Positions 660 to 3,700 of a DNA stretch of 32,000 nt are shown piece by piece. Every line of letters begins with the position of its first letter. The stretch's first letter is position 1. The notes beneath the pieces are model-generated. The model saw only the letters and a list, made by a program, of their open reading frames with translations, was not told where the DNA came from and ran no database searches. Location of the stretch: assembly GCA_054661495.1 (NCBI GenBank), contig BAAFSQ010000026.1, positions 1 through 32,000 of the forward strand, read 5' to 3'. The translations under genes were made by a program, and so were the position numbers. Source of the DNA: Zygophlyctis sp. KS116. Its lineage: Eukaryota; Fungi; Chytridiomycota.

Positions 660-724
660 CCCAGTGATGAAAGCTTTGATCTTGACTATTATTGTATGAT
701 GTCAACTAATCTTCTCTCTGAGGG
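660..724 (+). ncRNA. SNORD7: Box C/D snoRNA, predicted U6 A47 2'-O-methylation guide (mgU6-47/SNORD7-like)
   Basis: Box C GTGATGA 664-670, box D CTGA 718-721, terminal stem CCC 660-662/GGG 722-724, C'-like ATGATGT 696-702. Guide CTAATCTTCTCT (706-717) is the exact complement of conserved U6 AGAGAAGAUUAG (human 43-54); D+5 nt T713 pairs with A47. Confidence 0.85.
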
Positions 725-753
725 GAAATAATTAAATTGCTTTAAATTTATTC

Positions 754-3700
754 TTAGGCAAATTCATCTTCTCGGTCGTTTTCAACATTGGAAGTCGTTA
801 ATGACTCTAGCCCACCAAATGTAATAAAGTGATTAGGCCGGTGAATCTCATGATAGAATTCCTTTCATTTAAATTTTATAATTTCTTACCTTTGGTACAT
901 CAATAGTTAACTGATATTTCATGTCCACTCTATGCTTTGCTCCCATAAAGTTGTAATTCCATATTCCATCTCCATCCGGGACCATAAAGAATCCTAAAAA
1001 TCTGTCGCTAAGAAGTAGCTGAACCTTTTCATAAAAACTAGCAACATATCCTGCTGGGTTGGCTCCAAGATCTTTATTGGTTTTGCCCCATTCAAAACCA
1101 GATGGAGTTAATTTGTATGCTGTCAAGGAACATGATCCAGGAGTAAATGACACAGTGATTATAATCGCCCGATCTCCATCCCAAGATTCTGGATTATCAG
1201 CCATTATCCTAGAGTGCATAGTTACATCTAAAGGACTTAAAGTAGGTAGCTCGTTCGGCTGTGTGTGAATCCATCCTAAAGGTTCATAATCATTGAGGTA
1301 TTCATGATTAGGTAGCATATGAGGTAAATTAACTTGTTGATGTGTACCCCATTGCGGAACTATTACAATCGCACGAATTTCCTTAACTTGTACATTATCT
1401 GAAGGACTAACCCCGTACATATAACCAGCAATTTGAGTTCTTAAATCCGCAGAGCAAATAAATCTTTTTAGAATATTTTTGGGCATGACATACGTGTAAT
1501 TGTTTTCGTTTATATCTTCAGTGCTGACATATATGTGATTGGTTCTTAGATGAAGATTTGTAGAGGAAATAGCTCTTACTCTCCAATCAGTCTTTGACGC
1601 AAATGCTTGAGTTTCATAATTGGAGGTTGTAGTAACAATCATCTCATCTCCATGAACATTTTGAGTTTTGGTAGTGACAGCCGTAAGTTGAGATGAGTCT
1701 CTCCCTTGTTTCTCAATCTCTGCAATCTGCTGTCTCTGTAAAGAAGGCGCTGAGATTTCCATTCCTAAAATAATATCACGAATTTCAGATGATGTTAATG
1801 AGGCTACATTAACGTTATTCTTCTTGCCATAATCCGCCAAAATTAAATCTTTCAATGATACTTCTACTTTCACCCATTCCTCATCAGTCAATGTTGGCCA
1901 AATATGATGAGATTCAGTTATAACTGATTTGTCTGGACGCAAGGTAATTTTGGTTTTTTCGTTGTTAACACTTAATGCACGAAGAATCAAAATAAGTCTA
2001 GAAAAGGCAGTGTAACTAGAAATACTTTTCAGCCATTCGTCATACTAAAGGGTAAGAAAATATAATAGTCTTACCAAGTTAAAGAGAACCATTTGAGGTT
2101 CAGTAGCTTTCAAAATCAAGTCTCCAAACTTTTCCACTTTGAGGCAAGCCTGGAACGGCAATTGTAACTCCGATCCCTTTATTACTATATTAGGGAAGTC
2201 CAATAGATGAACTTCAAGAGGATCCATCATAGCTTTTCGTGTACAAATAATCTGCTTCGGTTGTTCTTCCACTGGGAGAGAGCGAATTAAAGCAGCTACT
2301 TCTTCTGCAGTTTTCCATTTAGCTAATTGACCTAGACGCTTTTGACCAGCCCAAACAGATGTATGGATCACTTTCAAAAATAGCTGTCCTGTTCTAGGGT
2401 TAAATATGAAAATTGCTCCATTAATCGGTTTAGTAGTTAAATTTCCTTCAAACGTTTTATGAATAGTAACACGATACACATTGGTATCATCAACAAACCA
2501 AATAATCTGACTAGAGAATAATTCACCGTAGTTTTGGGAAGATAGATATGGCTCGGCTGGCTCCGATGAGTAAAGTTGCAGACCTTTTCTAATACGCTCT
2601 CTCAATACATACATGGCAGGATTGGCCTTCATTATTTTACCCATTGCTTGCTGTACCAGTGGTTTCAATCCAGGGAACCAGTTACCGAATGAGCTGTGCA
2701 TATTGTATGCAACATCTATTCCAACCATTAGACCAGTAGGTGAAGGATATATGGACATATTATCAGTGGTGTAGTCTAAAAATTTAGCTCTAGTATATCG
2801 TTCAATATCGTGGGAGTCGAAGTCTCCCCAACGGAGCTGAACGTCAACCCAGAACTTTTGTGTTGTAGCAGCCTCAAAGGAATCCTTAGTATCTGTCATT
2901 AACGAAGGTTTTGAAACATTCCATTTATAAGCCGCAAATAAGAGAATATCCGCACAACTGCTGTTCATTTTGTAAGATTTACGTGGATGAATTGTTTCTT
3001 TCTGAACTGTTTCAATTTCAAGGGCTTCTAATTCCTGATCAAATACCTGACATAAATCCATAACAACTGATTCATGGATTTTTTGCCATAAATGAGCCCT
3101 GAATATTTGAATCAGCGAAATTTTGAGGGTCGGGATTTTACCATGCATGAAGATTCCAGTCAAATCAAGCTGTACTTGGAATCCTACGTATACATTTGCC
3201 CTGTTAATAGTGGGCGACCACCACAATGTAAATCGACGATTCGGGATTTGATTTAAACCAGACCGCTGAGCATTGGTGAGTTTTTTGAATTTCATAGACT
3301 CTTCAAATCCAGAAGCCTTCTCCCAAAACAACCCTTCCCATGTGGGGAAATATGTACCTTTGAAAAGCGTATGTTCCAAAATTCCTTCAACGCCACCAAG
3401 CGCTTGAATCATATCAGTTCTGTAATTATTGAGATTCCAAAGTTTTCCATCATGTCTCTGATGAGTCCACCAAAATGGATTGTTCTTCATCATACTGTGC
3501 TGCTTAAAATCAGCTCGGATTCTCCTATAGTTTAAAAGGAAACTGCTTACCATCCTTTGTCATAAGCTAATGTATGTCGGTCTTTTTGGAAAAGAGTGTT
3601 TATCCGGGGAATACCCCTATCCCAACTATCTTCAAGATCTTCGAGAGTAAGCCTACGATTTTGTGCATTAGCCTCCTGACGCTTCAGCGCATATTCTGCC

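Follow-up and report, generated by a model that had tools for sequence, protein, structure and literature searches.

A compact predicted box C/D snoRNA with a U6 ACAGAGA-box guide, convergent with PRP8 in a chytrid fungus

We describe an element of about 65 nt at positions 660-724, plus strand, of the window (the whole 32,000-nt stretch of chytrid DNA analysed here) that is very probably a minimal box C/D snoRNA and the chytrid counterpart of snoZ30/mgU6-47/SNORD7, a reading based on its motifs, its match to the snoZ30 model and its homologs. The snoRNA itself is newly recognised and unannotated, whereas the family of U6-Am47 guides is already known. A preliminary description had proposed a guide for the U6 ACAGAGA box equivalent to mgU6-47/SNORD7, and three lines of sequence evidence argue for that equivalence: the match to the organism's own U6, the rank of snoZ30 as the top Rfam match, and two homologous loci, here called L003 and L065.

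Predicted structure and U6 target

Box C, box D, a CCC/GGG stem and a 12-nt guide before box D had all been assigned in the preliminary description, and each was found in its assigned place. Read from 5´ to 3´, 660-724 has the order CCCAG-UGAUGA-AAGCUUUGAUC-UUGA-CUAUUAUUGUA-UGAUGU-CAA-CUAAUCUUCUCU-CUGA-GGG. Box C (GUGAUGA, 664-670) contains a UGAUGA that is invariant in a three-way alignment with the homologs, and box D (CUGA, 718-721), together with both halves of the terminal stem (CCC, 660-662; GGG, 722-724), is read directly from the sequence and likewise invariant in all three. Pairing of C660-C662 with G722-G724 leaves A663-G664-U665 as a 3-nt bulge ahead of the GA in box C; the box C/D kink-turn requires such a three-base bulge. 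G725 is a possible fourth base on the 3´ side of the stem, which has 3 bp in the window, 4 bp in L003 and 3 bp in L065; because the stem does not vary among the homologs, it gives no covariation support. The folding energy of the window RNA was not better than that of shuffled sequence (z = -0.08), and unremarkable folding energies are usual for C/D RNAs.

Both internal boxes are present and both are degenerate, as is common among C/D RNAs. Box D´ (UUGA, 682-685) belongs to a YUGA that follows box C by exactly 11 nt in all three homologs (UUGA, CUGA and UUGA), and the 11-nt spacer itself (671-681) is a possible second guide position. Box C´ (UGAUGU, 697-702) has the equivalents UGAUAA in L003 and UGAUAC in L065 and stands 15 nt before box D.

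The D guide, CUAAUCUUCUCU at 706-717, adjoins box D and forms 12 Watson-Crick pairs with U6 AGAGAAGAUUAG. The organism's own U6 gene lies at G000:C436:156-268 on the minus strand and scores 61.3 bits against a cut-off of 44 bits with the Rfam U6 model, which finds one such gene in the 12.7-Mb assembly; a TATA-like stretch lies upstream of the gene and a T run at its end. Its sequence includes GAUACAGAGAAGAUUAGCAUGG and within it the guide complement, so that the exact complementarity claimed earlier holds at 12 of 12 positions, and the case that had been named as telling against the guide, an own U6 lacking the complement, does not apply to the C436 gene. The fifth guide base back from box D is U713, and it faces the last A of ACAGAGA in the own U6, in agreement with the earlier choice of A47 by the D+5 rule. 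In the Rfam alignment the targeted adenosine is approximately A43 of the own U6 and corresponds to human A47 and S. pombe A41, an equivalence taken from the U6 sequence conservation described in PMC5855946. Among the organism's own U2, U4, U5 and U6, only U6 gives the D guide 12 contiguous Watson-Crick pairs, and the second-best match has 6.

The genome also encodes fibrillarin (PF01269), with two exons on G000:C43 scoring 208.9 and 133.6 bits. In the mechanism we propose, boxes C and D would form a kink-turn closed by the CCC/GGG stem, the folded RNA would assemble with Snu13, Nop56, Nop58 and fibrillarin, the 12-nt guide would pair with its U6 complement, and fibrillarin would then 2´-O-methylate the U6 adenosine that faces guide base five, counted back from box D.

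Some features of the spliceosomal RNA genes themselves were also noted. The own U6 (L001:156-268) has an extra GGCUUCGGCC hairpin before the T run, an AU-rich 5´ stem-loop and a somewhat unusual 3´ domain. U5 genes stand in tight tandem arrays, with three copies within about 500 nt at G000:C456:220-712 and two at G000:C51:52195-52520, and U2 is present in two full copies of identical sequence, along with a split match on C912.

Relation to known U6-Am47 guides

At Rfam gathering thresholds the whole window gave no match. At relaxed E-values, the best same-strand match among 4227 families was snoZ30 (RF00288, SNORD7/mgU6-47) at all three loci, with 25.0 bits (E 0.0086) for window positions 660-725, 40.8 bits (E 5.6e-7) for L003 and 26.0 bits (E 0.0046) for L065. 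The comparison with SNORD7/mgU6-47 models that the preliminary description had suggested thus returned the expected family as the top same-strand match, at 25-41 bits, and none of the three loci reached its gathering threshold of 50 bits. The window RNA is absent from automatic annotation because its score lies below the Rfam cut-off. A minus-strand match to plasmodium_snoR16 (670-795, 26.7 bits against a 70-bit cut-off) spans the PRP8 stop codon and aligns poorly, and we took it as chance. A C/D-like motif farther upstream (CUGAUGA at 525-531, CUGA at 598-601) was set aside; it has no terminal stem, Rfam match or conservation.

In the RF00288 consensus the guide has the same sequence and likewise adjoins box D (UUAAUCUUCUCU-CUGA), and the stem of the chytrid RNA has the geometry of the model: two bases remain unpaired ahead of box C. 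L003 also resembles the 5´ half of the model (GAGU..GUA.A.UCUGA), a likeness that speaks for common descent and against convergence on the guide alone. The model, however, has 97 positions, and the window RNA lacks about 30 nt of its interior. Vertebrate mgU6-47 genes are intronic, whereas the chytrid gene is independent and intergenic.

Among fungi, a close parallel is S. pombe snoZ30, encoded by mgU6-47 (work of Zhou et al., 2002, cited by bioRxiv 10.1101/2023.01.27.525755 and PMC5855946), which is likewise a box C/D snoRNA with a guide to the ACAGAGA-box region and the same adenosine, Am41. Its deletion abolishes U6 Am41 and causes only a mild cold-sensitive splicing defect; vertebrate Am47 is guided by mgU6-47, and S. 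cerevisiae U6 has no 2´-O-methylation (bioRxiv 10.1101/2023.01.27.525755; PMC5855946). Compared with S. pombe snoZ30, the chytrid RNA has only about 65 nt, scores below the Rfam family cut-off, and has a function that is predicted. It also lies 9-29 nt from the PRP8 stop codon, a placing not known to have been described for S. pombe. In N. crassa, CD11 is the predicted guide for U6-Am47 and was described as partially similar to mgU6-47 (PMC2780460). It differs in being 79 nt long, intronic and multi-functional: its D´ guide serves U6 and 18S and its D guide 26S (PMC2780460), whereas the chytrid RNA would address U6 with its D guide, and no further target emerged for it. Drosophila snoU6-47 (RF01221) shares the guide and box D in a local match at 705-721 (16.9 bits), but only 17 of the 132 model positions match and there is no full-length similarity.

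Archaeal C/D sRNAs are 50-70 nt long and have short fixed box spacers. The chytrid RNA resembles them in overall size and in its short fixed spacing (11 nt from C to D´, 15 nt from C´ to D), but differs in its eukaryotic host, its spliceosomal RNA target and its sequence affinity to eukaryotic snoZ30.

Longer C/D RNAs were also seen among metagenomic contigs. Several of them (L016, L019, L027, L029, L053 and L082) carry the same U6-A47 D guide and, before D´, the sequence AUGCGUGUCA(U). This second sequence complements U6 AUGACACGCA, and the base it selects would be the C that corresponds to human C77. These would be single snoRNAs with both guides on U6.

Homologous loci and gene neighbourhood

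Relatives were sought with the last long PRP8 exon only (window:890-1990, minus strand). The closest match to this exon was L003, in which a 64-nt homolog (L003:4230-4293, minus strand) lies 13 nt past the PRP8 stop on the opposite strand and has the order CCCCA-AUGAUGA-GUCUGUAAAAU-CUGA-UUUAGAAA-UGAUAA-UCUU-UAAUCUUCUCU-CUGA-GGGG. Metagenome contigs were also scanned for a pattern of box C, 28-58 nt and then UAAUCUUCUCUCUGA, which yielded at least 80 loci. One of these, L065, has a 61-nt homolog (1926-1986, plus strand) that is tail-to-tail with PRP8 and 9 nt from its stop. The PRP8 proteins of the three lineages are 95-96% identical. Third-codon identity is 55-58% between the window and L003 or L065, which indicates that neutral sites are close to saturation, and 77% between L003 and L065.

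Against this divergence, CCCA, UGAUGA, the YUGA at its fixed distance of 11 nt, UAAUCUUCUCUCUGAGGG and the end of the PRP8 coding region are all retained in the three-way alignment, with the guide core UAAUCUUCUCU invariant in all three homologs; the interior of the snoRNA and the upstream spacer have diverged. Between the window and run X4, which represents a second strain, there are seven differences in the 176 nt of 484-659 and none in 660-752 (P ~0.02 at the upstream rate).

In the window, the last PRP8 exon (754-861, minus strand) ends in ...EDEFA with a TAA stop at 754-756, 29 nt from the snoRNA end at base 724, the distance given in the preliminary description; its picture of a compact intergenic snoRNA tail-to-tail with PRP8 is borne out by the sequence and by both homologous loci. 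An AATAAA directly past the PRP8 stop on the minus strand could let the window PRP8 mRNA end near base 725. Since the gap to the PRP8 stop is only 9-29 nt, a convergent overlap of the snoRNA gene with the PRP8 3´ UTR is likely, and in L003 and L065 the 3´ UTR almost certainly runs antisense across the snoRNA gene. Upstream in PRP8, the intron at 862-889 (minus strand, 28 nt, GTAAGA...AAAG) is spliced out, exactly 28 letters being missing in one metatranscriptome contig (X15), which directly supports the ultra-short introns of this genome. Metatranscriptome contigs from two runs cover PRP8 from 841 upward and none falls in 201-800; such libraries and assemblies miss 65-nt RNAs.

On its other side, the snoRNA is separated from a divergent gene by a spacer of 208 nt (452-659), the presumed promoter region. 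The neighbour in the window is a minus-strand gene (ATG 449-451) whose product is small and cysteine-rich and begins like a signal peptide (MKFLL...). In L003 and L065 a class-Ib tRNA-synthetase gene, also divergent, takes its place, with a start codon about 65-75 nt away. We considered an intronic origin and rejected it: there is no conserved upstream 5´ splice site, and L003 and L065 have no room for host exons. These two features indicate that the snoRNA is an independent gene. It probably uses a short bidirectional promoter region, being driven from the spacer that it has in common with the divergent neighbour while converging at its other end on PRP8, whose 3´ UTR probably lies antisense across it.

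Within the spacer, an exact 19-nt direct repeat, AAACTCTATTTATAGACTG, occurs at 476-494 and 509-527, 33 nt apart; it has a TATA-like core, TATTTATA, and may be a promoter element. The telomere-like TTAGGG at 563-568 recalls the Tbf1 sites at yeast snoRNA promoters but is unsupported as such a site: its position is not conserved (about 22 nt upstream in L003, TTAGGT in L065), and it is altered in the X4 strain. At the contig start, inside the gene for the cysteine-rich secreted protein, a 77-nt repeat (1-77 and 283-359) is 100% identical between its copies. Contigs from runs X3 and X4 break or differ at this repeat, and it is a domain repeated in tandem or else an artefact of assembly. As to the source of the DNA, the best named relatives of the prolyl oligopeptidase encoded in the window belong to Chytridiomycota, at 60-64% identity (Entophlyctis, Clydaea, Rhizophlyctis, Blyttiomyces, Gorgonomyces and Dinochytrium), and window DNA was found almost only in freshwater metagenomes. 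Both observations point to an uncultured chytrid of fresh water.

The preliminary description had also pointed to synteny with PRP8 in relatives as a check, and had inferred a physical link between a U6 modifier and the protein that holds the U6 catalytic core. This synteny is present in the window, L003 and L065, where it has been kept despite the changed upstream neighbour, but not more widely. PRP8 loci at a greater distance, seven in all (L005-L007 and L091-L094), are 77-86% identical over the C-terminal exon, and a U6-complementary guide was found nowhere in the DNA fetched for them. Among the loci with the pattern, 75 were counted that extend 400 nt or more past box D, and PRP8 is adjacent there only in L003 and L065, L003 being among the 75 via the PRP8 search and not via the metagenome scan; and of the metagenomic guide-bearing contigs listed, at least 80 in number, all but one are without PRP8 linkage. 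The linkage is confined to a small clade. Since it is absent from the distant PRP8 loci and from the other guide contigs, a functional tie between the snoRNA and PRP8 is unsupported. The 9-29-nt gap is a tiny target for rearrangement, where a break would damage either gene, and retention of the linkage therefore needs no functional explanation. One of the distant loci (L005:1-2955, 82% identity over the C-terminal exon) carries a Hom_end_hint in the precomputed Pfam list, which suggests an intein; the PRP8 of the window, unlike that of L005, has no obvious intein.

Alternative readings and significance

We weighed three other accounts of the element. The conserved block might be mainly a signal of the PRP8 3´ UTR on the minus strand, either a 3´-end-formation element or a U6 look-alike (CAGAGAGAAGAUUAG), with the plus-strand C/D likeness secondary or coincidental. 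The block starts 9-29 nt past the PRP8 stop in all three lineages and so lies very probably inside the 3´ UTR, and the X4 strain is without differences in 725-752 as well, so that conservation of the block could partly reflect constraint on the opposite-strand UTR. A UTR signal, however, has no need of a UGAUGA 47-54 nt away, a YUGA exactly 11 nt further on, a CUGA and a stem in kink-turn register, all of them retained as the interior diverged; each of the three loci has snoZ30 as its top same-strand Rfam match; and the seven other PRP8 loci have no such element past the stop codon. We therefore consider this account very unlikely. A chance motif without function would draw on AT-rich sequence and short motifs, and the 13 C...D motif pairs in the window (both strands) are surely mostly spurious. 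Scaled to the 12.7-Mb genome they correspond to about 5,200 pairs, but with a composition-adjusted probability of 1.2e-7 for the guide 12-mer at the guide position the chance expectation is only ~6e-4 per genome, and two diverged lineages have the motif at the orthologous site, with conservation confined to particular elements. Chance is thus strongly disfavoured, to the point of being barely credible. The guide 12-mer has seven genomic occurrences, U6 and the snoRNA site included, and its reversed control four.

A genuine box C/D RNA could also have its main target elsewhere, at an rRNA site via either guide, or act as a dual guide that includes U2 G25. We think this unlikely. The D´ spacer has CUUUGAU in common between the window and L065 (7 of 11 bases) and is unrelated in L003. 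Bases 676-684 form nine pairs with U2 UAAGAUCAA (eight Watson-Crick and one G-U). The corresponding second guide for U2 G25 (675-702) was nevertheless rejected: it needs a D´ box at 686-689 (CUAU) that has no GA and overlaps the positionally conserved UUGA, and the pairing does not exist in L003 and is interrupted in L065, where C has changed to A opposite G25. With UUGA as D´, no target exceeds 8 contiguous pairs in the own U2, U4, U5 and U6 (best 6-8, wobbles included), and a whole-genome search for the D´ complement with one mismatch allowed gave 482 matches and was uninformative. An rRNA target gains some room from the absence of rRNA genes: 5.8S rRNA was not found in the 1175-contig assembly, from which the rDNA unit thus appears to be missing. 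Against any other main target, it is the D guide that forms the invariant part of the RNA and matches U6 exactly.

With the element taken as a U6 guide, the convergent overlap might itself be functional and couple PRP8 expression to U6 modification. The antisense arrangement has outlasted near-saturating synonymous divergence and a rearranged upstream neighbour; even so, we hold such coupling to be distinctly improbable. If true, PRP8 mRNA would contain the exact antisense of the snoRNA, and with it 12-15 nt that copy the ACAGAGA-box region of U6. Coupling could run through transcriptional interference, 3´-end definition at the snoRNP, an mRNA tail of PRP8 that the snoRNA pairs with or has methylated, or recognition by Prp8 of a U6-like element in its own message. 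Apart from any coupling, the PRP8 adjacency may be of interest for studies of convergent-gene overlap.

As a very probable U6-Am47 guide, the chytrid RNA would show that a eukaryotic C/D guide can shrink to 61-66 nt, with near-archaeal box spacing, and be fitted in with a gap of 9-29 nt to its neighbour in a compact genome. An RNA of this kind falls below the Rfam cut-off and goes unannotated, and reduced genomes therefore need guide-aware searches. The finding would extend the U6 Am47 guide, known in mammals, flies, fission yeast and Neurospora, to the early-diverging Chytridiomycota, and it speaks for an ancestral methylation of the U6 catalytic core in fungi, one that budding yeast has lost.
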